Sequence record: NC_061440.1
Length of the DNA stretch: 64,000 nucleotides
Strand: one strand, 5' to 3'
Position numbers and translations under genes: made by a program. Shown here in pieces: positions 40,568-57,811 of the stretch. The notes beneath the pieces were generated by a model, which worked only from the letters and a program-made list of their open reading frames with translations, was not told the DNA's origin and ran no database searches. Positions within the stretch are counted from its first letter, which is position 1; each line of letters starts with the position of its first letter.

Positions 40568-41254
40568 ATGAAACCTGACTACACTCTGCTGAAACGTAGT
40601 AAGACGCACGAAGATGTTTTCGCTTTCGTGTTTGACAGCGAGTTGCTTGTTCAATTCAAAGCTGTCCAGTTGCATAAAGCTCTGACCGAAACGCTCAAAG
40701 CAAACTGCATCAATGAAGTCGATATCCTGTGGCGTGACGGTACGCGTACGGTCCAACAACTGGTTGTGCATCATACGCGTGAGTTCGTACAGTTCGACAC
40801 TATCGTCCACAACTACAGCGTGTGCCTGATGCTTCGCGCACAAGGCGTTGGTCATTCGCTCGCTGTGCCTGTCGATGTTCGTTCTATGTATGACGCCGAC
40901 GGCCCGATGATCAGTGAGATTCGCATTGATAGTGAAACAGTCGCTGATCTGATGCGTCACATTAAAGCCACGCCATACATTGATCCAGAAGAAGATGACG
41001 ATGTTGGCGATATGGATGAAGATGATGATTGGGATGACGATGATGATCTCGATCAGACCGAGTTCCACGATATCGAAACAGAATCTATCGCCGATAACAA
41101 ATTGCAGGTCGGCGATTGGGGATATCGCGCACACGACTGGGCGGTCACTTTGACCGATGAACAGGTAGACCGCATTCACTTCCTCGAAGTTGGCATTGAC
41201 CCTGACATTGAACTGCCTATTGCAGATGATGCTAAGAAGGACGCATTCTTCTAA
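40568..41254 (+). CDS. Hypothetical protein with an acidic tract
   Basis: ORF (alternative GTG start at 40559). Confidence 0.75.
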   Translation: MKPDYTLLKRSKTHEDVFAFVFDSELLVQFKAVQLHKALTETLKANCINEVDILWRDGTRTVQQLVVHHTREFVQFDTIVHNYSVCLMLRAQGVGHSLAVPVDVRSMYDADGPMISEIRIDSETVADLMRHIKATPYIDPEEDDDVGDMDEDDDWDDDDDLDQTEFHDIETESIADNKLQVGDWGYRAHDWAVTLTDEQVDRIHFLEVGIDPDIELPIADDAKKDAFF

Positions 41255-41588: not shown

Positions 41589-41933
41589 ATGCGTTTTAAC
41601 GAAGTATCGAAAGAAGCACAGGTTGCGTTAATGTCTAGCGCACTTGCGGGAGTAATCGAAGCATTCACCCGCGACGAAGACGATGAAGGCCGTAAGATTC
41701 TCGTCATGGCCCTCAAGCAAGTAGGCCTGACGGTAGATGAGTTCGGCGCGCTTATCTCTGACCTGTCTCCAGAAGTTGAACTTGAGATCGTTCGCGTTAT
41801 GGAAGCTGCTGATGCCGAAGCAGATGAAGAGGACGAAGACAGCGAACTCACCACGATGGAGGAGCGCCCTGGCAACCTAAATGATGCGCCTAACATTAAC
41901 GCTGATGGCTGGGAGAACCTCAAAGATGAGTAG
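41589..41933 (+). CDS. Acidic hypothetical protein
   Basis: ORF. Confidence 0.75.
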   Translation: MRFNEVSKEAQVALMSSALAGVIEAFTRDEDDEGRKILVMALKQVGLTVDEFGALISDLSPEVELEIVRVMEAADAEADEEDEDSELTTMEERPGNLNDAPNINADGWENLKDE

Positions 41934-42129
41934 TCAAGATGATGTGAATGGTAGAATTGCTGCGGCCGACGAGCAACGTCAGAAAGAGCGTGAATCACGC
42001 TATGATGATTGGTCGATCGACGACCTGCGTGATGCTCTGCTTGAGAATGGTCTTGTATTTGACGGTGAAGACGTAGACGACTACAGCCGCGCAGACTGTA
42101 TCAGACTGTTACTGGCTGATGGGTTCTAA
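41926..42129 (+). CDS. Small protein with an HeH-like module
   Basis: DWSIDDLRDALLENGL..DYSRADCIRLL. Confidence 0.7.
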   Translation: MSSQDDVNGRIAAADEQRQKERESRYDDWSIDDLRDALLENGLVFDGEDVDDYSRADCIRLLLADGF

Positions 42130-42182
42130 GCACAAAACTGGACAAAATCGTGGTTGTCTCAAATAGCTGCCTGAACTATACT
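42130..42182 (+). promoter_or_regulatory. Promoter: GCA-N7-GG box, -35 TTGTCT, -10 TATACT
   Basis: GCACAAAACTGGACAAAATCGTGGTTGT, shared almost exactly with 43143. Confidence 0.8.
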
Positions 42183-42188
42183 ATATAG

Positions 42189-42366
42189 ACAGCGAGACAA
42201 CTATCTCTCTGTATGCCTTTGTTACTGCTTGACCGTGTGTTTTTCGATTTTCCCGGACACACGGTCCTTTTTAAAGTGGACTTCGCTGAGGTTCCTTTAA
42301 AAAGGGTTCGATACCCTTTGAGCGCGTCGGGCTTTACGCGGTTTCCGCCTTACGTGCTCTCATGCT
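42189..42366 (+). ncRNA. Candidate sRNA or structured leader with a T-loop-like hairpin
   Basis: 10-bp stem GACCGTGTGT/ACACACGGTC plus T run; AAGGG-TTCGATA-CCCTT. Confidence 0.45.
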
Positions 42367-42386
42367 AAACCGCAAAGGAAATTGAA

Positions 42387-43094
42387 ATGCCTACTACTTC
42401 ACGTCCTAAGACAGAAGACAAGTTCTCCCGTGCTCGCGCCGCTAAAAACTCACCTGAGCGTCAGGCCGCGGCCGCTAAGAAAACGCCACGAGGTCCTTCC
42501 TCGGTTCGTCCTAAATCAACGGCAGATCGTGAGCCTAAGATTCGTGACGAGGAGCGTGTGTACAATCTCGTACATGCAATTCTGAGCGCGTGGAAAGCTG
42601 ATGTGGGACATGCCGAAAACACGGCAGCATCTGCTGGTATCATCAAAGTGTCTCGTCGTAAAATTGAAGGTGCCTTGCGTGACCTCAAGAATACACGCTT
42701 CACTAAAATCCCGACGCTCATTAATGACGTCCTCGTGTATAACGAAGTCTGCAATGAGTTCGGGCAGTGGGTGTACGTTGAGCATGACAGTCCTGATTGG
42801 ATTTTCGTGCGTCTGCCTGAAAACAGCACACCCGTGCTTCGTGCTGATATCAGTTACAACAAGACTGACGAAAGGTCTGCGTCTATCACAACGTCCAGTG
42901 AAGCACTCATGGAAACGTTCGATGACAATGACGACGAAATCGAGATTCTCGAATGTAACGATCAAGATATTGAAGATCTCGAATCTGCTGAGATGCGCAA
43001 GCGTCTGGTAGATGCGCAAATCATCAAACCTGAAGCTGCTGCCAAGCTGCAACGCCCAGACTTAATGAAGCTCTGCGCGTACTACGGCAAGTAA
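42387..43094 (+). CDS. Hypothetical protein: basic N-terminus, C-terminal HeH-like module
   Basis: AAGGA RBS. Confidence 0.8.
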   Translation: MPTTSRPKTEDKFSRARAAKNSPERQAAAAKKTPRGPSSVRPKSTADREPKIRDEERVYNLVHAILSAWKADVGHAENTAASAGIIKVSRRKIEGALRDLKNTRFTKIPTLINDVLVYNEVCNEFGQWVYVEHDSPDWIFVRLPENSTPVLRADISYNKTDERSASITTSSEALMETFDDNDDEIEILECNDQDIEDLESAEMRKRLVDAQIIKPEAAAKLQRPDLMKLCAYYGK

Positions 43095-43142
43095 GCAATA
43101 ATGAGCAGGCAGTGTAGTAGCTGCCTGCTATCTGCGAAGTAT

Positions 43143-43196
43143 GCAGAAAACTGGACAAAATCGTGGTTGTTATCTGAAAGCAACCTATGCTATACT
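43143..43196 (+). promoter_or_regulatory. Promoter: GCA-N7-GG box plus extended -10
   Basis: GCAGAAAACTGGACAAAAT ... TGCTATACT. Confidence 0.8.
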
Positions 43197-43239
43197 TAAT
43201 GCAGACGCAATATCGCGTCGGCAAGCAAATCAAACAACA

Positions 43240-43255
43240 AATACTGAGGAGTATT
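43240..43255 (+). promoter_or_regulatory. SD hairpin AATACT-GAGG-AGTATT
   Basis: Before ATG 43260. Confidence 0.85.
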
Positions 43256-43259
43256 AATC

Positions 43260-44870
43260 ATGGCACGTCTGGAAACTAACACTAACCTGGTTGGCAAAAC
43301 TATCGTCCTGCTGAACGGCACCAAATCTAAAATCGAAGATGCAATCGCGTCTGGTTATAAAGTGAAGGGCCAGTCAAAACGTATCGCCACCCGCTGCGTC
43401 ATCAAAGAAGGTTCTCACTTCCGCGAAATTGAGCGCATGAACATGAGCCAGCTGGAAGATACTGGCGAAGGTTACGTTAAACTGAAAGATGCTAAAGCGT
43501 CGGGTAAGAAAGCTGGCGCCAAAGAGAAAGAGCCGAAAGCGTCTGGCAAGAAGACTGGCAGCAAAGCTACTGCCAAAGAGAAAGAGCCGAAAGTTCGTCG
43601 TAAGTCTTCTAAAGAGCAAGGCGATGAGTATCAGGCTCTGGCGAAAGAAATCATCAAAGGCGGCAAACGTGCTGCGCCAGTTGAAATCGACGAGATCGAT
43701 GGCGACCTGACTGATACTGTTGCTCAACGTCTGGTGGACGTGCTGAACAATACCGAAATCGCCAAGCTGTGCGCTGACAACAAAACGCCGATCGCTAACG
43801 CTATCGAAGTTGCTTACGGCGCTGAGTTCGCACCTGAAACAAACGTCATGCAAATCACGCTGAGCCTGCAATACGCGAAGCCTGTTAAAACGCAGTCATC
43901 TTCTACGCTGGAAAACGCCGATGCAATCGCGGCCCGTGCTAAGAAAATGATCGCGCCTAAGCTGTCTAAGAAACTCGCTAAGGCGATTCGTGAAGCGTTC
44001 GGTCTGGAAGACGCCGCCGAGCTTGAAGCTGGTACCGTGTTGTTGTCTGATGGCGCTGAGTTCGTCTTCTGCGGCGAGAGCGCGAAGCACCTCGGCAAAG
44101 CGTTGCTGTATGTTGTAGAGACCGACAAGTTCAAATCTGTTGTAGGCTCTGCGCTGGCTGATTACGAAATTGGTCAAGAAGAGGAAGAGGAAGAGGAAGA
44201 AGAAGACTTCGAGGAAGAAGAGTCTGAGGAAGAAGAAGAGGAAGAGGAAGAAGAAGAGGAGGAAGAAGACGGCGAAGAAGAAGACGGCGAAGAAGAAGAC
44301 GGCGAGTCTGACGATACTGAATACCAGTATGTGGCCGTGACCAAAGATCATACCAACATGATCAACAAGAAAGTCACCGCTAAGTATCACGCCGCGCTGG
44401 CTGAACGCTTCAACACAACCGAAGAAGCTCTGGTCCCTGGCCTCGTGTTGACTGACGGGGAAACAACGTTCGCTTACCTGGGCTGTGATAGCAAAGGTGG
44501 TCTGCTGGTCATCGACGTTGAGGCTGAGGAGAACGAAGAAGACGTTCTGCTGTACAGCAAAGCCGATATCAAAGAACTGACCGACTTCAATCCTGTGCTG
44601 GATGACGTAGAAGGCGCTGCTGATGATGAAGGCGAAGAAGAAGACGGCGAAGAAGATCTGGACGAAGAAGACGGCGAAGAAGATCTGGACGAAGAAGACG
44701 GCGAAGAAGAAGAAGACGACGAAGACTTCGACTTCGATGATGTTCCTGCCGTTGACTTGAAAGATCTGTCCGAAGACGAACTGCGTGACCGTGTCGTTGA
44801 AGCCGGCCTGACCACCGTGCGTAAAGCTGACAAAATGAACGCGGCTCAACTGCGCAAGCTCCTGAAATAA
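43260..44870 (+). CDS. Multidomain protein with poly-Glu tracts and a C-terminal HeH-like module (536 aa)
   Basis: Long E/D runs, internal duplicated domain. Confidence 0.85.
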   Translation: MARLETNTNLVGKTIVLLNGTKSKIEDAIASGYKVKGQSKRIATRCVIKEGSHFREIERMNMSQLEDTGEGYVKLKDAKASGKKAGAKEKEPKASGKKTGSKATAKEKEPKVRRKSSKEQGDEYQALAKEIIKGGKRAAPVEIDEIDGDLTDTVAQRLVDVLNNTEIAKLCADNKTPIANAIEVAYGAEFAPETNVMQITLSLQYAKPVKTQSSSTLENADAIAARAKKMIAPKLSKKLAKAIREAFGLEDAAELEAGTVLLSDGAEFVFCGESAKHLGKALLYVVETDKFKSVVGSALADYEIGQEEEEEEEEEDFEEEESEEEEEEEEEEEEEEDGEEEDGEEEDGESDDTEYQYVAVTKDHTNMINKKVTAKYHAALAERFNTTEEALVPGLVLTDGETTFAYLGCDSKGGLLVIDVEAEENEEDVLLYSKADIKELTDFNPVLDDVEGAADDEGEEEDGEEDLDEEDGEEDLDEEDGEEEEDDEDFDFDDVPAVDLKDLSEDELRDRVVEAGLTTVRKADKMNAAQLRKLLK

Positions 44871-44935
44871 ACCTGTAGTATCGCAACACTGAATAATGTA
44901 CGCCTCAGACAGGGGCGTACATCTGACAACTAAGC

Positions 44936-44949
44936 TGATTGAGGAATCA
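44936..44949 (+). promoter_or_regulatory. SD hairpin TGATT-GAGG-AATCA
   Basis: Before ATG 44954. Confidence 0.8.
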
Positions 44950-44953
44950 CACT

Positions 44954-46204
44954 ATGTCAAACGCAAACAAAATTCTGCTTAACGCCCGTGTTCGTCGTAC
45001 TGATGGCACCATCACTTACATCAACAAAGTAAACGCTAACGGTTATAGCACCGACGCGAAAGGTCCTCAAATCCCTGTGAAGCGCATTGTCTTTGCAGGC
45101 AAGATGTTGAAAGAGATTGCGGAGCCGTTCGCAAAAGGCGAGTACGTGATTGTGCAGGGTGTCGCTGTGAAGTTGAACAAGCGCCAGCAACGTGAACTGG
45201 CTGATGGTACTCTCGACGAGAAAGCGCTGCGTCCTGAGTTTGGCCGTTTGGCTATCATCGACCCTGAAACAGGCAAAGCAACTGACGGCAAGAAAGTGAA
45301 GCCGAAAGCTGATAAGAAAGACGGCGGCCTGAAAGCTACGCGCAAGCATAGCGGCGATACCAGCACGAAGAAAGAGCGCAAAGCTGAGAAGGCGAATCTG
45401 AAAGACGACCTTGACTTCATTCAGTCAGACAAGATTGACCGTAAAGCTGAACTTGTCAAGCTCCTCGACGGCTCTATCGCTGACGCGAATACGAAAGAGC
45501 GCCGTAAGCAATTGTCCGAAGCGTTTGACATGGACTGGAAAGATCTTAAAAAACACGGCGGTAAAGGTGTTGTCAAACATCTTGGTCGCAAGGCCGCACA
45601 AAGCGCCGTTGACCGTCTGTCTGCTACGCTGACGCAAGACGCATTCATCAAACAAATGCCGGCTGAGTTGAAGCGCCTGATTCAAGATCGTCGTCTGGTT
45701 CTGAATAAGCGCCAGATTGAAGCTGTACTCTCTGCATTGGGTCTGGACGTTAAGTTCTACGCCATCGCAATGCAAACGCTGCTGGGTAACCTGTCGCTCG
45801 CTGTAGACGACACGGCCGTGAATCCCAAAGCAGGTAAGAAAGCAAAGAAGCGCAAACCAGCAAAGCCTGAGTATGCGTCCGATAAAGAAATAAAGCGCCG
45901 TATCAAAAAGATGAAAGTCAGTTTGATCATGCCTCCTAAGAGCGAAATCAAAACGGCTAAAGCCCACTTGAAACAGGCGAAAGCCATTCTCGCCGACAAG
46001 CTGGGTATCTCGTCGAAAGATATCAAGCGTGGCCTGATCGTGCACCACAAGAACGGCGTTGACTACATGTTCGTTGCGTGTGACCTGCGCGGACCAATCT
46101 TCATCGACAAAGATGGCGATCCGTCTGTGTATACCTACGCCAACCTCGAATCGACTTTCGACTTCACGCTGGCGAAATCTTCTGAGCTGGATGAGGCTGT
46201 ATGA
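44954..46204 (+). CDS. Lys-rich protein sharing domains with ORF 43260
   Basis: Homologous N-terminal and C-terminal segments. Confidence 0.85.
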   Translation: MSNANKILLNARVRRTDGTITYINKVNANGYSTDAKGPQIPVKRIVFAGKMLKEIAEPFAKGEYVIVQGVAVKLNKRQQRELADGTLDEKALRPEFGRLAIIDPETGKATDGKKVKPKADKKDGGLKATRKHSGDTSTKKERKAEKANLKDDLDFIQSDKIDRKAELVKLLDGSIADANTKERRKQLSEAFDMDWKDLKKHGGKGVVKHLGRKAAQSAVDRLSATLTQDAFIKQMPAELKRLIQDRRLVLNKRQIEAVLSALGLDVKFYAIAMQTLLGNLSLAVDDTAVNPKAGKKAKKRKPAKPEYASDKEIKRRIKKMKVSLIMPPKSEIKTAKAHLKQAKAILADKLGISSKDIKRGLIVHHKNGVDYMFVACDLRGPIFIDKDGDPSVYTYANLESTFDFTLAKSSELDEAV

Positions 46205-46584
46205 CAAATAACGAAATACTCCTGTCTGGTATGTTTGCTCAACTGTATGCGCGGCTGGTAACGGCCGCAATACTGAAAACGCATGTGTTCTATTCTGACT
46301 TGGCTCCGATAGTATTCGGCATCCAACTGTCCGAAGTGAGCACTGCGCAATATGACGCTCTGTGGAGTTTAGTAGCGACTTCCATGAGCGTCGATATCTC
46401 GCACGGAAGAGCACCGCTTGCTGCGCTCTATGTGTCGCGGTCATCTGATGATAAGAAGCCGAGTCGCAAGTTCTTCCGTGAGTATCACAAGATTACAGGC
46501 AAGCATCTGTCGGACAAAGAGTGGCAAGCACTCGTCCAGCAGGTGTACACTCAATACGAATCAAATCTCCGAGAGCCATCATGA
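46201..46584 (+). CDS. Hypothetical protein
   Basis: ATGA coupling. Confidence 0.7.
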   Translation: MTNNEILLSGMFAQLYARLVTAAILKTHVFYSDLAPIVFGIQLSEVSTAQYDALWSLVATSMSVDISHGRAPLAALYVSRSSDDKKPSRKFFREYHKITGKHLSDKEWQALVQQVYTQYESNLREPS

Positions 46585-47042
46585 AAAAAGCAAAGGTAGT
46601 AATTAGTCGTGGTGGATATCGACCGGCCTCCCACGAAGAAGCACAAAAGCTGGTGGTCGAAATGTTGTTAGCTTCAATCGGCGTTGACCCTACTATACTG
46701 AGCCAACAAATGCTGTTGAACGTTGCGAACTATAACTTCCTGACGTCAATCGCAGATACAGGCAAAGCAAATAACGCGAACCAGACAACTCTGCATAAAA
46801 CTGTAAAAGAACTTAATGCGTTTTGTAGATTGCACAAGATTCCGCTGGGCTTGCTAATTATGCCCCATACATCGGCTAGTGATTATGCTGGTGATGAGGT
46901 TGTAGCGATTCCATGGGAGCATGTGCTTAAAAACACATTAAGCCAGAACGCTGTCAATTCCCTGTTCCAAACAGTCGAAGCTGATGGCTATCCGCAGTTT
47001 GTGACTGACGCGAAAACAGTAGAGGAATACAATGTTTTATGA
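46581..47042 (+). CDS. Hypothetical protein
   Basis: ATGA coupling. Confidence 0.7.
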   Translation: MKKAKVVISRGGYRPASHEEAQKLVVEMLLASIGVDPTILSQQMLLNVANYNFLTSIADTGKANNANQTTLHKTVKELNAFCRLHKIPLGLLIMPHTSASDYAGDEVVAIPWEHVLKNTLSQNAVNSLFQTVEADGYPQFVTDAKTVEEYNVL

Positions 47043-48312
47043 TCACGTATTCAACCACGACGAAAAGCTAACGCTCTTGTCGGTGGCTGAGTCTAAATTC
47101 CTGGTGCGGCTCGACTGCCCTGATTACTTGAAGAAGTCGAAGCACTCAATTGAGATTCGCCACACTGTAACGAACCGCGGCGAGCAACGTCGAAGCGGTG
47201 TTGTGAATACAACCTTTGTTCCGCGTATTCATACTGCAACCGTTCAGCGTTTGGTGCGTGAAGTTCGTGACAATGCTAACGTTAGTTCTGCGAACAGCCT
47301 AGCCGCGTTGTTCGAACTTGGTCTGGGTGTGCCTAAGCAAAAGGACATTGCAACGTACCTGCGAGACTACTCGCGTGATAACGATAAGAAGGGCGTGGGC
47401 ATCAAATATATCCGCAAACTGATTAACGAGTATCATCGCAAGCACCGTCATAGTTTTGCAGGAAGTCGCTGGCTGATGCCTGCTGTGTACACCGCGAACT
47501 TGCTGAACATGCAGTCATTCATTCATCTGAAAGAAGACGGCTACAGCAAGAAGGTCAAAGTGCCTGACGGTCTGCCTGTTGTTCTGATCTACCAGAACAC
47601 GAACCACGCCGAAGCTGAGTTCTCTTTGTGTGACGCGTTTGCGATTAGCCCACTGGGTTATCCGATGCCGTTCGCCCAGATTGCTCTGCGTCCTGAGTTC
47701 AAGGCTGCACCGAAGACCTTCCGTTCTAAAGCGTTACGCGGCAAAGGTATGTATAGCATGGTGATGGGTATCATGCACTGGGAGAACGGCGATGCACTGT
47801 CGAACTTCCGTGAACTGATGGCTATCGACGACGAGCCGTATCTGACTCTGCTGGGCGATGAGCAGTACGCTGACCGTCGCAGCCCTGAATATCAGGCTCT
47901 GCTGGACAAACGTGCTGAGTTCCATGAGCAACGCCATGAGCATAACGAAGCGATTGCGAAGTATGGCAACACGACCCGTACGCTCAAGCCTAAGCAGGTG
48001 GAACGACTCGAACGTGCGGAAGCCTTCTTCAAAGAACGCAAAGCGTTTATGGACGAGTTTGATAAGTTCGAGAAGAAAGAGAACCATCACGCTGCGAAGA
48101 AATTCGCTGTGGCCCGAGCGCAGTTTGCTGCCGTTGATTGTGGTACCGTTATCGACCGTTCAACCTACATGGCGGTTGCTTCCGGCCTTGATACTGTAAA
48201 CAAGATTCTCACGAAGTGGGGATTTACGACGGTCGACACTGTTAATAGTAGTTTGAAGAAGTCTATCCTTACATACGACCCAACGACCGCTACTCGCGTC
48301 TGGTCTGTGTAA
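47032..48312 (+). CDS. Hypothetical protein (426 aa)
   Basis: GAGGA RBS. Confidence 0.8.
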   Translation: MFYDHVFNHDEKLTLLSVAESKFLVRLDCPDYLKKSKHSIEIRHTVTNRGEQRRSGVVNTTFVPRIHTATVQRLVREVRDNANVSSANSLAALFELGLGVPKQKDIATYLRDYSRDNDKKGVGIKYIRKLINEYHRKHRHSFAGSRWLMPAVYTANLLNMQSFIHLKEDGYSKKVKVPDGLPVVLIYQNTNHAEAEFSLCDAFAISPLGYPMPFAQIALRPEFKAAPKTFRSKALRGKGMYSMVMGIMHWENGDALSNFRELMAIDDEPYLTLLGDEQYADRRSPEYQALLDKRAEFHEQRHEHNEAIAKYGNTTRTLKPKQVERLERAEAFFKERKAFMDEFDKFEKKENHHAAKKFAVARAQFAAVDCGTVIDRSTYMAVASGLDTVNKILTKWGFTTVDTVNSSLKKSILTYDPTTATRVWSV

Positions 48313-48317
48313 ACCAC

Positions 48318-48333
48318 TTATCTGAGGAGATAA
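48318..48333 (+). promoter_or_regulatory. SD hairpin TTATCT-GAGG-AGATAA
   Basis: Before ATG 48337. Confidence 0.85.
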
Positions 48334-48336
48334 CGC

Positions 48337-51300
48337 ATGTCATCTAATACTAATAATCTGGGCGCTGCTGCAACATTCGGCTCTGAGACTCAAAAGCAAT
48401 TGAACGACCAACAACGTCGTGCTCATTCTGCTGAGTCGGGCCACGTAAACAAATGTACCATCGTTGTACTGACTTCCCTGAATGCCAACAATCGTTTCTC
48501 GTACATGTCTGCCGACGAGCAACTGCGTGAACACGATATCGTGGGCAAAGTAATGGACCGTCTGCCTGGTTTGATCGAACGTGCGTCTGGCGTTTCTTCT
48601 GACCCAAACAGTGCGTACTACATTCTGCATCCGAACAACGGCGTGCCGACCCGCATCGACGAGCGCATCAAAATCGGTGAAGCTGATTCTGTCATCGTTT
48701 CATATACTGTAAATAAAGCAGTGTCAGAAATGTATGGCAGTTTGTCACTGGCCCTGTTTAGTGCTGGCGAAGGTGATATCGCAGACCTCGCGGCTGAGTA
48801 TGGTATTCACTCCATCTCAATCGTTGAAGAGGCGAAAGCGCCTGACTACATCAAAGCTCTTGCCGAACAGGTAGAAGCTCTGAAAATTGTAAATCTCACT
48901 AGCATTGACGAAGCTGATGGTGCTCTTGAGAAGCCTGTCATTAATTACAGCGCTCTGCCGGGCAATCCAATCAACGTACTGTCTGGCGCTGTTCGTACCT
49001 TCATCATGCAATCTATCAGCGGCGAAGTCTTTGCTGCAATTCCAAATAACGGAGAATTGAACGTGAAACAACCTACCAACGCAACGCCGGTTAATCTGGA
49101 CGAAGACTTCGACGCAGAAGACGAAGTGGTGGACCAGCAGGGCGAAGGCGAAGAAGGCGAAGAGCCTACCGGTACTGACCTGTTCGGCTACAAAGCAGAA
49201 GCGCTGGACATTGGCCAGATGACCGAAGCTCTCGAAGCTCTGTCGTATGACGTTAGCGCGATGGACGAAGCAGGCATTCGTGAGTCGTTCGAAACTGAGC
49301 AACAAATCTGGCTGGAAAAGAACGACAACGCCGAGTCTGATGAAGAAGAAGACGATGGCGAAGAAGTTGAAGACGACGAAGATGAAGCTGGTGACGACGA
49401 ACCTCTGAACCCAGCTCTGTATCTGGCTCACCTGCTGTCTGCTGATATGCTGGACCGCCGCGCTCTGAAAACTCTGGTGCTGTCGCAGGACCTGAAGGTG
49501 TACAAGTCTGACACCGAAGAAACTCTGACAACCAAGTTGTTGGAATCGGTCGAAGACGCGACCGAAGAAGAACTGGTCGAAATGCTGACCGTGTTCGTTG
49601 GCCTGCTGGACGAGAAAGAAATTGATTGTCCGAACATGCGCGCCGCTCTGGCTTCTGATGAAGATTCCGAAGAAGAAGATTCTGAGGAAGAAGAAGACGA
49701 AGAAGAAGAGGAGGACTCCGAAGAGGAGTCTGAGGAAGAAGACGAAGACGAATCTGCTGTTGCCGATGAAGACGAAGTGCAACATCAAATCGACGCCGTT
49801 GAAGATCCCCTCGACTACTTCCAGTTCCCGGGCGGCGCACTGACTGCCGAGCAACGTATCGCTGCTGTTGAAGCGATGGGCGAAAACACCGAAGGCATGT
49901 CTATCGTGCAGGTGATGAAAGCGTTCCAGCGTATTCAAACCCAGACCAACGAAATCGACGTTGAGTCCGAAGGCGAAAGTAACGTTGCAGAACTCGAAGC
50001 GCTGCTTGGTCAGTACGACGAAGCGACCGTTCAGCATGTAGCTGAAAGCCTGGGCATCCTCGTTGACGAATGCGAAACCGTTGACGATATGATCGAAGCG
50101 ATTGCTAACGGCGGTAGCGAAGACGACTTCGCGGCTGTTGAAGAAATCGCAACCAACTACGGTATCGACCTGTCTGAAATTGCAGACGGTGATGATCTGG
50201 ACTTCGTTGATGCGCTGCTTGCCGTGCTGCCTGCGTTCCTGTCTGACGACGAGCAGGAAGAAGAAGACGAAGAAGAAGACGAAGCGGAAGAAGTTGAAGA
50301 AGCCGCTGATGTTGACACCGACGTTGTTGAAAACGATAGCCTGCGCTTCGTCAAAGACGTTAACACCGAAAACTCTGCCGGCCCGATGTTGTCTGTCGAA
50401 ATGGACCAGTCACTGGTGATCAACTTTACTTTGACTGACGGTGATACCTACAGCGAAATCGAATCTGAGCTGGCTGATATCAACGGCGTAAACTACCGCT
50501 ATCCGTTCAACATGGGTAAAGCTGGTAAAGCACCGGGCGCGATGCTGCTGCCTGCCCAGTCTCTGATTGAGATTACTGAGCGCACTCGCACTACTCGCTT
50601 CCTGGCCGATCCGAAAACGTTCGACGTTGCACTGTGGGCACAGAGCCTCGAAGCAACTCTGGCTGCTGAAATCGCTGCTGTCCTGTATGAAGGCCGCATC
50701 GAAGACGGTCAAGACCCAAGCGAAGCGGGCATTGTTGTCGGTGACTTCCTGGACGAAGAAGAACTGGAAGCGGCCACTGAACTCGGCCACATCGACCCTG
50801 AGCAGTTCGACGAAATGCAAGGCGACCACCTGCCTATCTCCAGCCTGTACAGCGCTCGTTCTCGTGTGCGTCCCGTGCGTGTAGATACCGCTTATGTTGC
50901 TCTGCATACCACCGTGCTGAACGTTGCAGTCCCTGGTTTCTGGGGCGATGCGCCAGTACAGCGTATGGTTCAGGCCGCTGTCAACCGTGTCATTACAATG
51001 GCGCAGGACATTGAAGGCATCAAAGTGTACGCAGGCTTCACTATGGAATCTGCCGCACTGCTGAACAACGATCGCCTGTTCGAAGCGCTGTCTACGCTGC
51101 GTGAGATCGAGAACGTCCAGTCTTACTCTGCTGCTGACGCTGCAAACTTCGACGATGCCGAAGACGTGATCGAAGTAGCTGGTGCGCTCGACTCTCGTGA
51201 CCTGCCACTGTCTATCCTGTCAAGCGGTCTGGCTGCTGCGACCTTTGACAACGGCGGTGACCTGACCGTTCTGGTTCCGTGCTCTGTCGTCGAAGAAGAA

Positions 51301-51342
51301 GACGAAGTGGACGAAGACGAAGACGACGGCGAAGACGAATAA
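48337..51342 (+). CDS. Very acidic 1001-aa protein with repeated small helical modules
   Basis: D/E tracts separating short helical segments. Confidence 0.85.
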   Translation: MSSNTNNLGAAATFGSETQKQLNDQQRRAHSAESGHVNKCTIVVLTSLNANNRFSYMSADEQLREHDIVGKVMDRLPGLIERASGVSSDPNSAYYILHPNNGVPTRIDERIKIGEADSVIVSYTVNKAVSEMYGSLSLALFSAGEGDIADLAAEYGIHSISIVEEAKAPDYIKALAEQVEALKIVNLTSIDEADGALEKPVINYSALPGNPINVLSGAVRTFIMQSISGEVFAAIPNNGELNVKQPTNATPVNLDEDFDAEDEVVDQQGEGEEGEEPTGTDLFGYKAEALDIGQMTEALEALSYDVSAMDEAGIRESFETEQQIWLEKNDNAESDEEEDDGEEVEDDEDEAGDDEPLNPALYLAHLLSADMLDRRALKTLVLSQDLKVYKSDTEETLTTKLLESVEDATEEELVEMLTVFVGLLDEKEIDCPNMRAALASDEDSEEEDSEEEEDEEEEEDSEEESEEEDEDESAVADEDEVQHQIDAVEDPLDYFQFPGGALTAEQRIAAVEAMGENTEGMSIVQVMKAFQRIQTQTNEIDVESEGESNVAELEALLGQYDEATVQHVAESLGILVDECETVDDMIEAIANGGSEDDFAAVEEIATNYGIDLSEIADGDDLDFVDALLAVLPAFLSDDEQEEEDEEEDEAEEVEEAADVDTDVVENDSLRFVKDVNTENSAGPMLSVEMDQSLVINFTLTDGDTYSEIESELADINGVNYRYPFNMGKAGKAPGAMLLPAQSLIEITERTRTTRFLADPKTFDVALWAQSLEATLAAEIAAVLYEGRIEDGQDPSEAGIVVGDFLDEEELEAATELGHIDPEQFDEMQGDHLPISSLYSARSRVRPVRVDTAYVALHTTVLNVAVPGFWGDAPVQRMVQAAVNRVITMAQDIEGIKVYAGFTMESAALLNNDRLFEALSTLREIENVQSYSAADAANFDDAEDVIEVAGALDSRDLPLSILSSGLAAATFDNGGDLTVLVPCSVVEEEDEVDEDEDDGEDE

Positions 51343-51354
51343 TATCGTCTAAAC

Positions 51355-51381
51355 GAGTGGCTCGAAAGGGCCACTCACTTT
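51355..51381 (+). terminator. Probable terminator
   Basis: GAGTGGCTC-GAAA-GGGCCACTC followed by ACTTT. Confidence 0.7.
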
Positions 51382-51398
51382 CTTGGGGATCTGTAAAC

Positions 51399-52220
51399 AT
51401 GACACAAGAAGTAGACCACGGAGCTAACATCGTTCAGATGATTGGTGACCGTGACGAGAAAATCCGCGAACTGACCGCAAACTACCGCGAAGTGCATGGT
51501 CAGAAGGTTGACCTTGAAGCTGAGTTAAATGTCTTTGCGAACGAGAACAAAGACCTCCGCTTAACGATTCGCCGTAACGAACGTACTCATGCCGCCGAGA
51601 TTGCTCTGCGCGATGAACGCATTCGTGAAGTGGTTGGTTTCTGCAACGAAGAAACTCGCGCAAAAGCTGAGTTATCCGCAGAACTCGAATCTGTAAAACA
51701 AAAGAGCGCACCGGCAATTGCCCTGCCCTTCGTTTTGCAATTGATAATGTCTTCTGGCGTAGCGCACTACCACGCAATCATCGCCCAATGCGCTATCGCT
51801 GCTGTTAACCGAGCAACAAATAAAGTTGCCCGCGAGTTGCGTGAAATCTATGATAACGATAATGTAGTGAAGCATCCTTCGCTGTATCGTGTCGCAACCC
51901 GCCTGTGTAGACAACTCGATGTTGACCTGCCGACTGTTCCTGAACTGCAAAAGCACCTCAAAGAATACGTGGCGCAGAACATCGACTTCTACCTGAAGGA
52001 CCCGCAGTACGATCTGACTGAATCTGCCTTGCGTCAGATTATCGCTGCGAAAAACAATGCTGCACATTATGGCTCTTATGGTCGTGATGTGTATCAGATG
52101 TTTGACTGGCTACCAGCTCTGACTGCAAGCCTGGAAGATGTTGAAGATGACTACAACGATTTGGTGGAACAATCTGTCTATCAAGTCTGTCGTAATCTGA
52201 TTAGCGATAGCTTTTCTTAA
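51399..52220 (+). CDS. Coiled-coil hypothetical protein
   Basis: Heptad-like N-terminal half. Confidence 0.75.
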   Translation: MTQEVDHGANIVQMIGDRDEKIRELTANYREVHGQKVDLEAELNVFANENKDLRLTIRRNERTHAAEIALRDERIREVVGFCNEETRAKAELSAELESVKQKSAPAIALPFVLQLIMSSGVAHYHAIIAQCAIAAVNRATNKVARELREIYDNDNVVKHPSLYRVATRLCRQLDVDLPTVPELQKHLKEYVAQNIDFYLKDPQYDLTESALRQIIAAKNNAAHYGSYGRDVYQMFDWLPALTASLEDVEDDYNDLVEQSVYQVCRNLISDSFS

Positions 52221-52246
52221 TCTGTAAAAGTTACCTGCAATCAAAA

Positions 52247-52265
52247 CTGTAAACACTAATTGAAG
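52247..52265 (+). promoter_or_regulatory. CTGTAAAYWYTAATTGAAG motif (candidate phage-sigma promoter)
   Basis: Near-identical to 52956-52974. Confidence 0.5.
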
Positions 52266-52314
52266 TTCGAACCGAGCGACAAGCTCACACTTATAAAATC
52301 CCGGAGCATTAACA

Positions 52315-52866
52315 ATGGCTAAAGCACCAAAGACTTCACTGACACCTACCCTGGTTTCTCGTATCGCTAAAAAATCCGGCTCTATCGGTACTTCAAAAGT
52401 TAAGCCGTCTGACCTGCCGCACGATATCGTGATGGAAACCGTGTTGCCTGTTGAGCTGATTGGCTTCATTACCGACCGCACCGAAAACAGCGTTACCATT
52501 CGTCACAAAAAAGGTCACGGTTCTTCTGCGCAAATCGTTTCTACCTTCGGCCCGAACCAACTGCTGTCCGTGCTGGGCGAAGCTGGTTCTCACGGTAGCG
52601 TTATCGCTCTGATTAATGCGCCGGTTCGTGAATACAAAGGCTTCAACGTTAAATACAAAGGCTCAACGCTGATCGCTACCTCTGTTGAGACTGGCGAAGT
52701 TGTTGAAGTGAACACCGCACTGCCGGGCATCACCGTTCGCGCTACTGTGAACGAAACTGCTGCCGCTAAAAAGTACGGTACGCCGCTGCCTACCAAAGCT
52801 AAAAAGCTGGACAAAGGCGATAAAGCTGGCAAATCTGCGAAAGCGGTAAAGAAAGTAAAAAAGTAA
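52315..52866 (+). CDS. Basic hypothetical protein (183 aa)
   Basis: K-rich termini. Confidence 0.85.
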   Translation: MAKAPKTSLTPTLVSRIAKKSGSIGTSKVKPSDLPHDIVMETVLPVELIGFITDRTENSVTIRHKKGHGSSAQIVSTFGPNQLLSVLGEAGSHGSVIALINAPVREYKGFNVKYKGSTLIATSVETGEVVEVNTALPGITVRATVNETAAAKKYGTPLPTKAKKLDKGDKAGKSAKAVKKVKK

Positions 52867-52892
52867 GTAAGTCTGACGAAGACTTCTAACTT

Positions 52893-52974
52893 TCGAAATC
52901 TGTAAATATTAAGTATGCAGCGGGATAAAATGTTCCGCTGCCTGTCTCTCGAAATCTGTAAATCTTAATTGAAG
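52893..52974 (+). promoter_or_regulatory. Tandem TCGAAATCTGTAAAT motifs (52893-52907, 52949-52963)
   Basis: 15-bp direct repeat upstream of ORF 53010. Confidence 0.55.
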
Positions 52975-53009
52975 CAACGTCGCTTCTAATCAAACAGGAA
53001 ATAAATACC

Positions 53010-53807
53010 ATGGCTAAAGCAACCGCAAATACCGCAGCAATCGTTCTGGCTAAAATGCTGGGCGTAGTTATCGAAAACGCCGACGCGAAAGAAATCGCAG
53101 CAATCCTGAAAGAAGCCGGTCTGACTGTCTCTGGCGGTAAAGTGGTAAAAGCTGAAAAAGGCGGTAAAGCTGCTAAAGGCAAAAAGGCCAAAGCACCTAC
53201 CGTTGCTGAAATCGTCGCTGCCATCAAGGACGAAGAAGAACTGGACATCTCCGGCGTAAGCGAAGATGACCTGCGCGCCGCTGTAGTTAAAGCGAAACTG
53301 TCCACCGCTAAGAAAGCAAAAGCGCTGGACGAAGATGACCTGCGCGATCTGCTGAACGAAAACCTGGGCGGCGAGTCCGATGAGGACGAAGACGAAGACG
53401 AAGAAGAAGAGGACGACGAAGACGAGGACGAAGACGACTCGGACGACGAAGATGAAGACGGCGACGACGAAGACGAAGACGACGAAGACTCTGATGAAGA
53501 AGAAGAGGACGACGAAGACGACGAAGACGGCGACGACGACGAAGAAGAAGAGGACGACGAAGATGAGGACGAAGATGAGGACGAAGATGAAGATGATCTC
53601 GACCTCGACTCCCTCGACAAGAAAGAGCTGTTAGCTCTGGTCCTCGAACACAAGCTGGCGCCGGCTAAGAAAGCCAAGAAAATGGACGAAGATGAACTGC
53701 GCGAACTGTGCGAAGAACACTTCGGTGGCGAAGACGACGAAGACGAAGATGAGGACGAAGACGACGAAGACTTCGACGATGAAGACGAAGACGAAGACGA
53801 CGAATAA
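53010..53807 (+). CDS. Asp/Glu-rich protein with two HeH-like modules
   Basis: About 80-residue D/E tract between two homologous 40-aa modules. Confidence 0.85.
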   Translation: MAKATANTAAIVLAKMLGVVIENADAKEIAAILKEAGLTVSGGKVVKAEKGGKAAKGKKAKAPTVAEIVAAIKDEEELDISGVSEDDLRAAVVKAKLSTAKKAKALDEDDLRDLLNENLGGESDEDEDEDEEEEDDEDEDEDDSDDEDEDGDDEDEDDEDSDEEEEDDEDDEDGDDDEEEEDDEDEDEDEDEDEDDLDLDSLDKKELLALVLEHKLAPAKKAKKMDEDELRELCEEHFGGEDDEDEDEDEDDEDFDDEDEDEDDE

Positions 53808-54025
53808 GTCCTGATCTGAACCAGCCGCCCCTCTAGTTCTAACGAATGAGCGAGGGGCAAATATTCGTGTTAAAATGATGCGAATATTTTTGTAAAAAGT
53901 TTCAAAATTCCTGTTGTCGTATGTTGAACATAATAATGTATGACTACAGGAAATCAAACCTGAATAAATTTATCTTTTCATCCAGCGGTGAAAACGCCGC
54001 ATCAAATATAAAGTAAGGAACTATC

Positions 54026-54544
54026 ATGTCCAAGAAAGCAATTAGCGGCCTGAACAAAGAAATCCGCGCAATCGAAAAATCTGAAAAAGCTCTGACCAAA
54101 ACCGCTGGCGAAATCACCAAACAGTCCGAAGCGCTGGCTGCTCGCCGTGCTGGTCTGAGTGCCCAGGTCGAAGCTCTGCAAAACGACGGCGCGGCTCCTG
54201 CTGCTAAACCTGCTAAAGCGAAAGCCGCTAAAGCAGAGAAAGCTGCTAAGCCTGCCAAAGCTGAAAAAGCTGGCAAGAAAGCTAAAGCTGAAAAAGCTGA
54301 AAAACCTGCTAAGGCTAAAAAAGCCAAAGCTGAGAAAGCTGAGAAGCCTGCTAAAGCAGACAAAAAAGCAAAAGCCGCCAAAGCTGAAAAGCCGGCCAAA
54401 GCTGAAAAAGCTGGTAAGAAAGCTAAAGCAGAAAAACCTGCTAAAGCTGAAAAAGCCGGCAAGAAAGTGAAAGCCGACAAAGCTGGCAAAGCCGGTAAGA
54501 AAAGCAAAAAAGAAGCCGAAGACTTCGACTTCGATATGGAATAA
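54026..54544 (+). CDS. Histone H1-like Lys/Ala/Pro-rich protein with an N-terminal coiled coil
   Basis: Repeats such as AKAEKAGKK and AEKPAK. Confidence 0.8.
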   Translation: MSKKAISGLNKEIRAIEKSEKALTKTAGEITKQSEALAARRAGLSAQVEALQNDGAAPAAKPAKAKAAKAEKAAKPAKAEKAGKKAKAEKAEKPAKAKKAKAEKAEKPAKADKKAKAAKAEKPAKAEKAGKKAKAEKPAKAEKAGKKVKADKAGKAGKKSKKEAEDFDFDME

Positions 54545-54641: not shown

Positions 54642-55124
54642 ATGTCTGCCGAACATCTGCTCAACGACGACCTGCCTGACGACTCCTTAGTTGTCCCTGC
54701 ACTCAAACAGGACAAGCCTTCCTATTACGACTTGATGACGCTACGCTTAGAAGCTGGCGCACGTCTTGCTCGCTCCCTTAAAACTCTGGTCGATGCGCGT
54801 GTCATTCACGGTCCAGCGTTAAACGACCTGCTTCCATCCGCGTTGCGTATCGCTGAAACCCACTGGGCTGATATCTGCAACGGCCTAACTCCTGTCCATG
54901 ATGAGAAGAATAAAATCACGCTTGTTGGCAATCTGCCTGCATGTATTGAAGCGTTCCGCATTGTCGTTATGGAACATGCACAACGTAACGCACTGGAACT
55001 TGAGTGTCGTAACATGGTGGCACACGGCGATGGCTTTAAGCTGCTGACTCGCCCTCAACTGCTGCATATTGAACCTAAACACGTCTGCGATGGAAACTGC
55101 GACCATGACTCAAAAGCTGTCTGA
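54642..55124 (+). CDS. Hypothetical protein
   Basis: GAGGT RBS. Confidence 0.75.
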   Translation: MSAEHLLNDDLPDDSLVVPALKQDKPSYYDLMTLRLEAGARLARSLKTLVDARVIHGPALNDLLPSALRIAETHWADICNGLTPVHDEKNKITLVGNLPACIEAFRIVVMEHAQRNALELECRNMVAHGDGFKLLTRPQLLHIEPKHVCDGNCDHDSKAV

Positions 55125-55647
55125 GCAACTCAACCGATATTTCAACCTCATGGAGAAAATCCGTGAGCAACTGTTCCGCACTCTGCCTGTGTCCGACCGT
55201 TACATGTGCATCGTAAGTTTCAGCACACAATACCAAGCATTGCAATGCGACCTCGTTAGCAAAGAGAGCCTGCTGCCTGCTAAACTCATCGAAGGCCTGA
55301 CTGGTCAAGAGCTGGTGGTGTATGGAACAATCAAAGCCCAGATTGAAAAGTGGGTTGCAGACGGTATGGTCGATGACTTCCCTATCGCGCAGGACGCCGA
55401 CACGTATGCTCAATATCGTGTGTCTGTCGGTGATGCAGAAACAGACCAGAGCCGTCAGACGATAGCTGATGAGGACTTGGCTGCGTATGTTGAATCGTTG
55501 CCTAAGTCAGATGCCCTGAAATACGTTGACCCTCTGAGCAAGTATGAGCTGGCTATTCTCTGCAAAGCATGGGGCATTCCCCAAGATGCCAGTGAGACTG
55601 TCATGCTGTCTCTCATCAAGGGTCATATTCTGCGCCGCGCTTCCTAA
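55105..55647 (+). CDS. Hypothetical protein with a C-terminal SAP/HeH-like segment
   Basis: LSKYELAILCKAWGI....SETVMLSLIK. Confidence 0.7.
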   Translation: MTQKLSEQLNRYFNLMEKIREQLFRTLPVSDRYMCIVSFSTQYQALQCDLVSKESLLPAKLIEGLTGQELVVYGTIKAQIEKWVADGMVDDFPIAQDADTYAQYRVSVGDAETDQSRQTIADEDLAAYVESLPKSDALKYVDPLSKYELAILCKAWGIPQDASETVMLSLIKGHILRRAS

Positions 55648-57808: not shown

Positions 57809-57811
57809 GTA

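Follow-up and report, generated by a model that had tools for sequence, protein, structure and literature searches.

The final 64 kb of the 265-kb genome of the Erwinia jumbo phage pEa_SNUABM_22 (Alexandravirus; NC_061440.1; about 324 proteins), which form the window analyzed here, contain a run of hypercharged proteins that share a short sequence module, and they raise the question of what such proteins might do beside the replication genes of a phage. The ORFs singled out in a sequence-only reading of this DNA are all present in the record as annotated CDSs for hypothetical proteins, and net-charge computation confirmed its observation of poly-D/E tracts close to K/A-rich proteins: gp324, gp329 and gp332 (ORFs starting at window positions 43260, 48337 and 53010) have net charges of -77, -193 and -98, and gp325, gp331 and gp333 (44954, 52315 and 54026) of +31, +15 and +27. 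Of the four proteins with the most negative charge in the genome, three are found here. The block lies on the plus strand, like all genes given with their window spans below, in the replication/early arm, with the SSB, UvsX and sigma factor genes upstream. As had also been stated, it stands just upstream of the topoisomerase genes: those for the large (GyrB-like) and ParC/GyrA-like subunits of topoisomerase II (55781..59464), the downstream synteny anchor, come directly after it, with two small orphans, gp334 and gp335 (54642..55647), in between. This position is circumstantial as evidence for a role on DNA; the terminase and portal genes share the strand of the block. The block is kept in one subclade of non-nucleus jumbo phages infecting Enterobacterales (Alexandravirus, Sasquatchvirus, Yoloswagvirus, Snuvirus, Salmondvirus and a Yersinia phage), where synteny is retained even if gp329 orthologs share just 33-40% identity, and is not present upstream of topoisomerase II in Lu11. 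This conserved cluster of hypercharged module proteins beside replication genes is real and previously undescribed.

The module spans about 40 residues and occurs five times, always inside the same 12 kb: in gp322 (42004-42126), at the C-termini of gp323 (42963-43091) and gp324 (44751-44867), and twice in gp332 (module a, 53241-53369; module b, 53598-53726). With a profile of the three clearest copies, the remaining two came next in rank (E 0.03 and 0.06) among 742 six-frame segments, all others having E >4. A mostly foreign profile, for which 41 of 42 sequences were taken from other phages, recovered all five copies from the six frames of the whole 265-kb genome with E-values of 2e-6 to 2.5e-16 and no sixth, the next match having an E-value of 5.4. 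The five copies, tracts and charges described earlier thus stand, but the "looser" copies proposed in the ORFs at 9715, 48337 and 55105 were detected by no profile; the 55105 product does have a helix-loop-helix-like stretch at its C-terminal end, which the module profile did not detect. The PHROG families of gp324 and gp332 match each other exactly at the module (E about 1e-6). Among 1.84 billion proteins it is found in 36 clusters or representatives, usually in very acidic proteins that carry 1-4 copies separated by poly-D/E spacers, and it is kept in six genera. The paralogous copies are old, at 19-67% amino acid and about 50-62% nucleotide identity, yet preserve the same core pattern. We conclude that the module is a real, rare, portable and HeH-like element.

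Its HeH-likeness is supported, at the level of sequence and modeling, by three converging lines. Pfam searches with 30 and 42 copies gave only weak matches, but the recurrent ones were SAP, Ish1, Rho_N and LEM/HeH and no others; the family member P0040 clears the curated Pfam thresholds for Rho_N and Ish1, providing a transitive link; and AlphaFold2 confidently predicts the gp332 modules as helix-linker-helix (pLDDT 82-90). The P0040 modules further have matches in PHROGs whose members join a domain of this kind to endonuclease VII and to Arc-like repressors. Like the HeH-fold domains (SAP PF02037, Rho_N PF07498, LEM PF03020, HeH PF12949, Ish1 PF10281), the module would consist of about 35-43 residues forming two helices and, between them, a basic linker in extended or turn form, with the common hydrophobic pattern L..L...EL(R)..v...gL......(K)..L(R).LL. 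It differs from them in that the window copies stay below all curated Pfam thresholds (best 19 bits versus 26.6), in the strongly acidic N-termini of its helices, and in its almost invariable setting within poly-D/E tracts, often in tandem. A Foldseek search with the full-length model matched no solved HeH domain. That the modules are acidic or neutral overall, with strongly acidic tracts around them, speaks against a simple binding of DNA by the whole proteins. The ligand of LEM-type HeH domains is a protein (BAF), not DNA.

The module is embedded in diverse architectures. Gp322 (41926..42129; 67 aa, acidic) is practically a lone module (found at E 2e-6 by the mostly foreign profile), and its Pfam Ish1 match of E 0.002 stays under the cutoff; P0023 and P0039 are its orthologs, and L009 and L011 contain copies. 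Gp323 (42387..43094; 235 aa; ortholog P0031, copy in L008) combines a basic disordered N-terminus, a central domain and an acidic stretch with its C-terminal module; orthologs were sought and missing in Y3, JA29, the Yersinia phage, Yoloswag and SNUABM_7. Gp324 (43260..44870; 536 aa; phrog_33433) has a small N-terminal domain, a K-rich linker, and then a domain of about 75 residues twice, with a poly-D/E tract after either copy (about 44172-44330 and 44601-44745); a D-F-D-F-D motif (44718-44741) lies immediately upstream of the module, which is retained in every ortholog. The basic gp325 (44954..46204; 416 aa) is paralogous to the second of these internal domains over its C-terminal ~75 residues (z 6.9; 0 of 2000 shuffles), and its residues 58-114 show a weak, marginal resemblance to uL24 (E 0.024). 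Three orphans syntenic across six genera, gp326-gp328 (46201..48312; 127, 153 and 426 aa), matched nothing in Pfam or PDB. In the AlphaFold2 model of gp329 (48337..51342; 1001 aa; mean pLDDT 74, domains 80-90), alpha/beta domains at residues 40-235 and 667-985, the latter followed by an acidic tail, bracket a center of at least four helix/9-10-residue linker/helix units with disordered acidic tracts between them (49048-49161, 49327-49401, 49657-49764 and 50251-50331). These predicted units fit degenerate copies of the module, short of proof. Gp329 has 31 homolog clusters; by structure it matches, in BFVD, shorter proteins from PaBG-type phages, and it has no PDB match. Beyond a terminator-like hairpin (51355-51376) follow the conserved syntenic orphan gp330 (51399..52220; 273 aa) and gp331 (52315..52866; 183 aa; phrog_22271), in which K-rich N- and C-terminal tails surround a beta-rich core.

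The block ends with an adjacent acidic and basic pair. Gp332 (53010..53807; 265 aa, 48% D+E) carries modules a and b separated by a poly-D/E spacer of about 75 residues (53370-53597) and a poly-D/E tail, the core of which, E-D-F-D-D, is conserved; a third, split module may make up its N-terminal region (hhalign E 7e-4, probability 26%), and its acidic tracts are modeled at pLDDT of about 50 without secondary structure. Gp333 (54026..54544; 172 aa, 30% K+R, 29% A) comprises a helical, coiled-coil-like N-terminal region of about 55 residues, K/A/P/E-rich repeats (about 54191-54505) with six K-P-A-K-A units, and an acidic-aromatic C-terminal tip (54518-54541). Across ten phages the net charge remains within -84 to -106 for gp332 and +23 to +30 for gp333, and the tip keeps the motif [DE]-F-[DE]-F-[DE] without change whereas the repeats drift; the D-F-D-F motif ahead of the gp324 module is similar to it. 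These conserved charges are compatible with an electrostatic partnership. The description of gp333 as H1-like holds for composition and does not extend to sequence families, as it has no Pfam, NCBIfam or PDB match. We know of no invariant acidic-aromatic C-terminal tip in the bacterial H1-like proteins AlgP of Pseudomonas and Hc2 of Chlamydia. Gp333 does resemble them in its short, K/A/P-rich tandem repeats, imperfect at the DNA level; both are reported to be DNA-binding and repeat-variable (PMC9239181, PMC2848022). Gp333 departs from these proteins in its additional N-terminal helical domain and in the about 15% D/E of its repeats, which hold its net charge to only +27. Its acidic end with aromatics is rather like those of the SSBs (E. 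coli SSB, T7 gp2.5, T4 gp32), where the tip docks replisome partners and folds back onto the basic DNA-binding surface; gp333 lacks their OB fold, and its DNA-binding part is putative. The union of a DNA-binding-type domain with poly-D/E tracts may further be likened, by analogy, to eukaryotic acidic-tail proteins (the HMGB1 tail, nucleoplasmin/NAP-type chaperones), whose tracts bind basic proteins or have an autoinhibitory effect on DNA binding; the block is prokaryotic-viral and shows no homology to these (no Pfam match).

Module proteins also lie among replication genes elsewhere. In one unrelated phage P0015 is encoded behind PD-(D/E)XK and AAA_24 genes, by DNA Pol A and a primase-helicase; in another P0026 is flanked by DNA Pol A and a RecA/UvsX-like gene, with a clamp loader near. 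Together with the block, three independent lineages thus place module proteins in a replication context, and it is gene position, in the replication/early arm here and in replication/recombination modules there, that links them to DNA metabolism. To this extent, a HeH-like module in proteins tied to phage DNA metabolism, the earlier proposal is supported. A gp32-like core in the module protein P0014 was tested and not confirmed. The SSB of pEa_SNUABM_22 itself has a tail of about 150 residues with alternating acidic and basic blocks, indicating that the phage's replication proteins do use charge-patterned tails.

The best reading of the block is a DNA-associated accessory role. We propose that its products are accessories of DNA or nucleoprotein assembled from three reusable parts. 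The HeH-like module, joined onto at least four different proteins, would tether all of them either to DNA or to a single partner that they share; the long disordered poly-D/E spacers would keep modules apart and, from their charge, would be expected to bind basic proteins or act as competitors of DNA; and the basic K/A-rich proteins would include gp333, seen as joining an H1-like repeat to an oligomerizing helix and to an acidic-aromatic C-terminal motif like the tip of an SSB. Gp332 and gp333 would most likely work as an electrostatic pair, with gp332 buffering, delivering or antagonizing a DNA-coating gp333 on replicating phage DNA. Here we infer that the module binds DNA, that gp332 interacts with gp333, and any role in compaction; compaction, histone-chaperone activity, coacervation and a replication compartment are suggested by composition only. 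As a whole, this replication-arm cluster of HeH tethers, poly-D/E spacers and the gp332-gp333 pair is a tentative proposal, to which we give somewhat less than an even chance.

Other explanations deserve weighing. DNA mimics, such as Ocr, Arn, ArdA and SPO1 Gp46, act on DNA-binding proteins, and the poly-D/E proteins could likewise be decoys for host takeover or anti-defense that sequester H-NS, HU, Fis or DNA-targeting defense enzymes, the HeH modules directing them to the nucleoid. Three large proteins of extreme negative charge, the many small early-type orphans around the block, and its subclade restriction and absence in Lu11, the distribution that an accessory set tied to particular hosts should have, would agree with this, as would the documented HU-inhibiting phage mimics (PMC8892312). 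However, the mimics to which the block proteins are comparable in acidity (T7 Ocr, T4 Arn, SPO1 Gp46; PMC8892312) are small, compact and folded, with rigid charge arrays, whereas the acidic parts here are modeled as long disordered homopolymer-like tracts on HeH modules, and neither Pfam nor NCBIfam shows them to resemble Ocr, ArdA or any other mimic. The conserved pairing with basic phage proteins and the replication context in unrelated phages also point to a phage-internal partner. Decoys seem unlikely. We consider it improbable, too, that multivalent HeH stickers on acidic spacers, the K/A-rich protein and SSB coacervate with phage DNA into a condensate concentrating the replisome, as a shell-less compartment or "phage chromatin", which was the more ambitious of the earlier readings. 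The multivalency of gp332 (2-3 modules) and its relatives (up to 4), the long disordered tracts, the opposite charges in neighboring genes and the blocky polyampholyte tail of the SSB would suit it, and neither a chimallin shell protein nor a phage tubulin is among the annotations of the deposited record. Yet this support is purely compositional, low complexity is common among jumbo-phage orphans, and the summed charge of about -370 for the three acidic proteins versus about +73 for the basic ones defeats simple charge matching, unless other partners or cations join.

That the proteins instead serve inside the virion or in its assembly, with the K/A protein condensing capsid DNA and the acidic ones acting as scaffolding or being ejected, is very doubtful. 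Comparable proteins do belong to the structural arm of this genome, namely a +64 K/A-rich one (record positions 161645-162316) and a -141 one adjoining the major head protein, and jumbo phages package many proteins of uncharacterized function (PaBG proteome); but the structural genes occupy the other strand and arm, module proteins of other phages reside in replication modules, and nothing as yet ties the block genes to the 14 identified PaBG virion proteins. Most improbable is a largely neutral expansion, in which slippage-prone GAA/GAC and AAA-GCT repeats inflated unrelated orphans, and local duplication left behind the shared module, which has no common function. The poly-D/E and K/A tracts are indeed imperfect tandem repeats at the DNA level, the gp332 spacer ranges from 14 to about 75 residues across orthologs, and the module was gained or lost in the 37797 ortholog. 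Against this, charge, module number and tip motif stay constant across genera despite sequence drift, the old paralogs retain their core pattern, and synteny outlasts the divergence of the gp329 orthologs.

The stretch 41500-56000 matches Erwinia phage pEa_SNUABM_22 (NC_061440.1, 265,146 bp, Alexandravirus) with 100% identity, window positions being record positions minus 201,146. It holds a block of genes, gp322 to gp333 (about 41926-54544), all of which are annotated 'hypothetical protein', and two topoisomerase II subunits directly follow it in the annotation, in keeping with the position just upstream of topoisomerase genes that the sequence-only reading had given. That reading had also counted five copies of a ~40-residue module in the block, and this count held: an HMM built from the three clearest copies ranked the other two next among 742 six-frame segments (E 0.03 and 0.06) and thereafter gave noise only (E > 4), whereas a mostly foreign profile, with 41 of its 42 sequences taken from other phages, recovered all five at E 2e-6 to 2.5e-16 in the six frames of the 265-kb genome. 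The sixth-best match of this profile in all six frames of the genome had an E-value of 5.4, and the module profile A2 agrees. Further, the PHROG families of gp324 and gp332 cross-match exactly at the module (E 1.7e-6 and 4e-6). The gap between the scores of the five copies and that of the next match shows the copies to be real and specific, and they all fall within 12 kb. They lie at 42004-42126 in gp322 (the 41926 ORF), 42963-43091 at the C-terminus of gp323, 44751-44867 at the C-terminus of gp324, and 53241-53369 and 53598-53726 in gp332. The looser copies proposed in the ORFs at 9715, 48337 and 55105 were detected by no profile, even at E up to 30. The first of these ORFs, gp256 (9715-9975), encodes 86 aa with 37% D+E; its N-terminal half shows an L..M...EL..LA.eRGL pattern followed by a poly-D linker, which is HeH-like by eye, and on which the module profiles are silent.

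The module had been described as HeH-like, and we compared it with SAP, Rho_N, LEM, HeH and Ish1, which we take to constitute the HeH clan. No window copy passed the curated Pfam thresholds of this clan, the best scores being 19.0 bits for Ish1 (cutoff 26.6) and 14.5 bits for SAP (cutoff 23.9). The module profile found a further family member, P0040, at E 7.6e-5 among 1.84e9 proteins, and this protein exceeds the curated cutoffs of both Rho_N (37.4 bits against 24.9) and Ish1 (41.9 bits against 26.6); PHROGs with a domain of this kind joined to endonuclease VII and Arc-like repressors are matched by its modules as well. SAP, Rho_N and LEM-like domains bind nucleic acid or, as with LEM and BAF, a chromatin protein, and the partners to which the domain is joined in these PHROGs are likewise DNA-binding proteins. 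In per-copy Pfam scans, 12 of 30 copies matched the clan (Ish1, SAP and LEM 4 each), as did 16 of 42 diverged copies (SAP 6, Ish1 4, Rho_N 4, HeH 2); only families of the HeH clan were matched repeatedly, if weakly, nearly all others being singletons. In the module alignments A1, A2 and A4 the residues L11, L20, A26, L34 and L37 are invariant or nearly so and a K-K-A-K-K linker is conserved, and the module thus displays the HeH-type pattern of leucine and other hydrophobic positions, together with the basic residue typical of the linker or of the point where helix 2 begins. An AF2 model from the gp332 family alignment places module a at residues 85-94, 100-104 and 108-118 and module b at 204-213, 219-224 and 227-238, each as a helix, a short turn helix and a helix with pLDDT 82-90; the size and topology of an HeH domain (about 35-45 aa, two helices and an extended linker) are found in this model. 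A Foldseek search of the PDB with the whole 265-aa, mostly disordered gp332 model returned no match at E < 5, a result that is uninformative for two 40-residue domains, and neither profile nor single-sequence queries with the module (A1, A4) found anything credible among PDB sequences. The transitive sequence link through P0040 and the predicted helix-linker-helix topology make it reasonable to regard the module as HeH-like rather than as a strict member of the clan. In a profile-profile comparison the N-terminal region of gp332 also aligns with the full module (E 7e-4, probability 26%), with a 17-residue K/G/A-rich insertion needed in the linker, and hence is possibly a third, split copy.

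A profile search of 1.84 billion representative proteins recovered just 36 with E <= 1e-3, most of them very acidic (25-54% D+E) and carrying one to four modules split by acidic spacers. Synteny of the whole block extends to Y3 (Sasquatchvirus), Yoloswag, SNUABM_7 (Snuvirus), Dickeya phage JA29 (Salmondvirus), Yersinia phage fHe-Yen9-02 and a 222-kb metagenomic contig, and in all these relatives the block ends at the topoisomerase genes and includes the gp324-type copy and both gp332-type copies; the gp322- and gp323-type copies are restricted to the Alexandra-like lineage. A tblastn search with gp329 retrieved 57 phage records, whose hosts are all Erwinia, Dickeya or Yersinia. Pseudomonas phage Lu11 has different genes upstream of topoisomerase II and lacks the block there, which implies that the block was acquired by the Enterobacterales-infecting subclade. 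Orthologs of the 478-aa product of the gene at 37797-39233 in three relatives (loci L008:4498-6177, L009:4607-6256 and L011:5357-6664) carry an inserted acidic tract with one HeH-like module, and the corresponding site in the product itself is only a short acidic loop. This is a presence/absence polymorphism of a cassette, and the module is a portable unit that moves together with acidic sequence. The module paralogs share 19-67% amino-acid identity and about 50-62% nucleotide identity; the latter value rules out recent gene conversion among the copies. They are hence old, and have been maintained individually rather than homogenised.

The juxtaposition of poly-D/E tracts with K/A-rich proteins, noticed earlier by eye, is borne out by the computed net charges, which are -77, -193 and -98 for gp324, gp329 and gp332 against +31, +15 and +27 for gp325, gp331 and gp333. 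The block contains three of the four most negative proteins among the about 324 genes of the genome. In ten phages the gp332 orthologs range from -84 to -106 and the adjacent gp333 orthologs from +23 to +30, and the C-terminal end of the latter is always [DE]-F-[DE]-F-[DE] though the repeats differ. A D-F-D-F motif also precedes the gp324 module in most orthologs, and in the window the DNA stretches encoding this motif and the gp333 tip agree at 90% identity over 29 nt. Lysine and arginine make up 30% of the gp333 product (54026 ORF) and alanine 29%; it contains six K-P-A-K-A units, encoded by DNA with periods of 9, 27 and 45 nt. It shares K/A/P-rich tandem repeats with bacterial H1-like proteins, and in this compositional sense the H1-like label attached to it stands; family homology does not, as neither Pfam, NCBIfam nor any PHROG of known function yielded a match, including to the linker-histone globular domain, Hc1/Hc2 or AlgP, and a search for homologs of its N-terminal 60 residues produced no significant match at the size of the database used. 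The two genes immediately preceding gp322, at 40568-41254 and 41589-41933, encode products with net charges of -33 and -22 and D/E/W-rich stretches; the acidic bias therefore begins before 41926, where the block had been taken to start.

The deposited annotation divides the genome into two arms. The minus-strand arm (about 44.6-186 kb) carries the capsid, tail and baseplate genes, and the plus-strand arm runs from about 186 kb through the origin to 44.6 kb, with a Holliday-junction resolvase, a sigma factor, an SSB, a UvsX-like recombinase, many small orphans, the block and topoisomerase II, and then terminase, portal and nucleotide-metabolism genes. Thus, the block sits among replication or early-type genes, outside the virion arm. 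In other phages, the four-module protein P0015 follows PD-(D/E)XK nuclease and AAA_24 genes beside those for DNA Pol A, dUTPase and a primase-helicase, and the two-module P0026, on a 137-kb phage contig, is flanked by DNA Pol A and a RecA/UvsX-like gene, with a clamp loader close by. Together with the block this makes three independent cases of association with replication or recombination genes. Another module protein, P0014, adjoins a YfbR-like nucleotidase gene; a T4 gp32-like SSB core in it was not confirmed by PDB or Pfam search and was dropped. The SSB of the present phage, gp245 (418 aa; L021:130-1386, NC_061440.1 positions 199629-200885), is encoded about 260 nt upstream of window position 1. 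Its tail of ~150 aa alternates poly-D/E and poly-K/S blocks with a lysine run at the end, which makes it a blocky polyampholyte, in contrast to the short acidic tips that classical SSBs carry.

The initial observation of repeated modules on oppositely charged proteins is largely correct. Its best-supported interpretation, which we advance tentatively and as falling somewhat short of probable, is that the block proteins are DNA- or nucleoprotein-associated accessory factors. The HeH module would be their shared tether, the poly-D/E spacers might regulate electrostatically or bind basic proteins, gp333 would be a DNA-coating H1-like protein carrying an SSB-tip-like docking motif, and gp332 and gp333 would form a conserved acidic/basic pair. 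The acidic tracts could alternatively mark these proteins as disordered DNA decoys against host nucleoid or defence proteins, which we consider unlikely; the DNA mimics Ocr, ArdA, Arn and Gp46 present a rigid folded acidic surface, whereas the tracts of the block are modelled as disordered (pLDDT about 30-55 across the gp332 and gp329 models, about 50 without any structure in gp332), and no block protein matched a known DNA-mimic family in Pfam or NCBIfam. Location in the virion interior is improbable for proteins encoded outside the virion arm. The tracts are encoded by imperfect tandem repeats of GAA/GAC and AAA-GCT types, as might be seen if the block were largely a neutral repeat expansion, and this we hold to be very improbable alongside the conserved charges and tip of gp332 and gp333.

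A chromatin or condensate function, as proposed in the sequence-only reading, is retained here as a hypothesis. The architecture is that of a stickers-and-spacers scaffold, in that gp332 has two (possibly three) modules and its relatives up to four, with disordered spacers between them, and an oppositely charged partner of conserved charge, gp333, is encoded next to it. We nevertheless regard a role of the block proteins as the scaffold of a condensate or 'phage chromatin' as rather improbable, and give equally little credence to the fuller proposal that an electrostatic phage chromatin orders the replicating DNA of this jumbo subclade, whose deposited annotation names no chimallin shell, by forming a shell-less condensate. 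Under that proposal, DNA would be coated by the K/A-rich H1-like protein and the SSB with its block-charged tail; the multivalent, HeH-tagged polyacidic gp324, gp329 and gp332 would cross-link or buffer the coating proteins; the [DE]-F-[DE]-F tip and the HeH module could constitute a specific sticker pair; and the condensate might recruit topoisomerase and the replisome. In jumbo phages without a protein nucleus about 70% of the genes are orphans and the cell biology is largely uncharted. The analysis defines a rare, portable HeH-type module tagging several hypercharged proteins beside replication genes, and a tightly conserved pair of genes for an acidic and a basic protein, with a short motif of docking type at the C-terminus, both of relevance to how phages without a protein nucleus handle a 265-kb genome. 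The domain and composition types are known; the architecture, in which HeH modules sit on polyacidic linkers and are paired with a K/A-rich protein, is new, and the accessible literature described neither these proteins nor any acidic HeH/SAP/Rho_N phage proteins. Should the module prove to bind DNA or a single shared partner, it would represent a new kind of targeting tag for phage replication factories. Binding of host nucleoid proteins would make the acidic proteins a new class of disordered DNA decoys; failing both, the block would be a well-documented case of conserved low-complexity orphans.

Searches of Pfam, PHROG and NCBIfam with all block proteins gave unknown-function PHROGs and sub-threshold matches only, and PDB sequence searches were likewise without a credible match for the products of gp325, gp328, gp329 and gp331. 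Across the PDB sequence searches with the module and these products, the Nudix matches at E about 0.004-0.2 look like chance. The AF2 model of the 1001-residue gp329 (48337-51342; 26 sequences, mean pLDDT 74) has N- and C-terminal alpha/beta domains, and in its centre disordered acidic tracts alternate with helical units, of which at least four consist of a helix, a 9-10-residue linker and a helix. These modelled units would be compatible with the degenerate module copies once proposed there, and do not prove them. Foldseek against the PDB returned nothing significant for gp329, its best matches, Cas7/Csm3-type RAMP folds at E 0.02, not being accepted. In a viral structure library, shorter proteins (289-420 aa), one of them from PaBG, match it at E 1e-6 to 8e-4; hence the central ~400-aa acidic/helical region looks inserted into an older protein of the wider clade, apparently in a lineage-specific event that separated two conserved alpha/beta domains. 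A ~75-aa helix-plus-beta domain is shared by gp324 (44350-44600, aa ~366-445) and the C-terminus of gp325 (46020-46204), with a local alignment z of 6.9 that none of 2000 shuffles equalled, and gp324 has a weaker first copy (z 3.5). Residues 58-114 of gp325 (45125-45295) bear a marginal likeness to the KOW/SH3-like region of uL24 in several PDB chains (E about 0.024); the PaBG paper also notes a resemblance to ribosomal proteins for several proteins of this phage group.

Outside the window, the structural arm also encodes extremely charged proteins, at record positions 161645-162316 (minus strand; 223 aa, K/A-rich, net +64), 166938-167894 (minus strand; net +42) and 108321-110369 (minus strand; net -141, annotated 'ATPase', beside the major head protein and prohead protease). 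Promoter and terminator scans gave counts at chance level, not above the shuffled expectation. The best terminator-like hairpin of the block, just after gp329 at 51355-51376 (9-bp stem, 6 G-C pairs, T-rich tail), gives a hint that a transcription unit may end within the block. The long minus-strand ORFs at 52886-53860, 44174-44344, 43896-44849 and 53944-54507, rich in Ser or Phe/Leu/Ala, are not genes: they are shadows that the GAA/GAC and AAA-GCT coding repeats cast on the reverse complement; a greedy ORF caller chose one such shadow over gp333.
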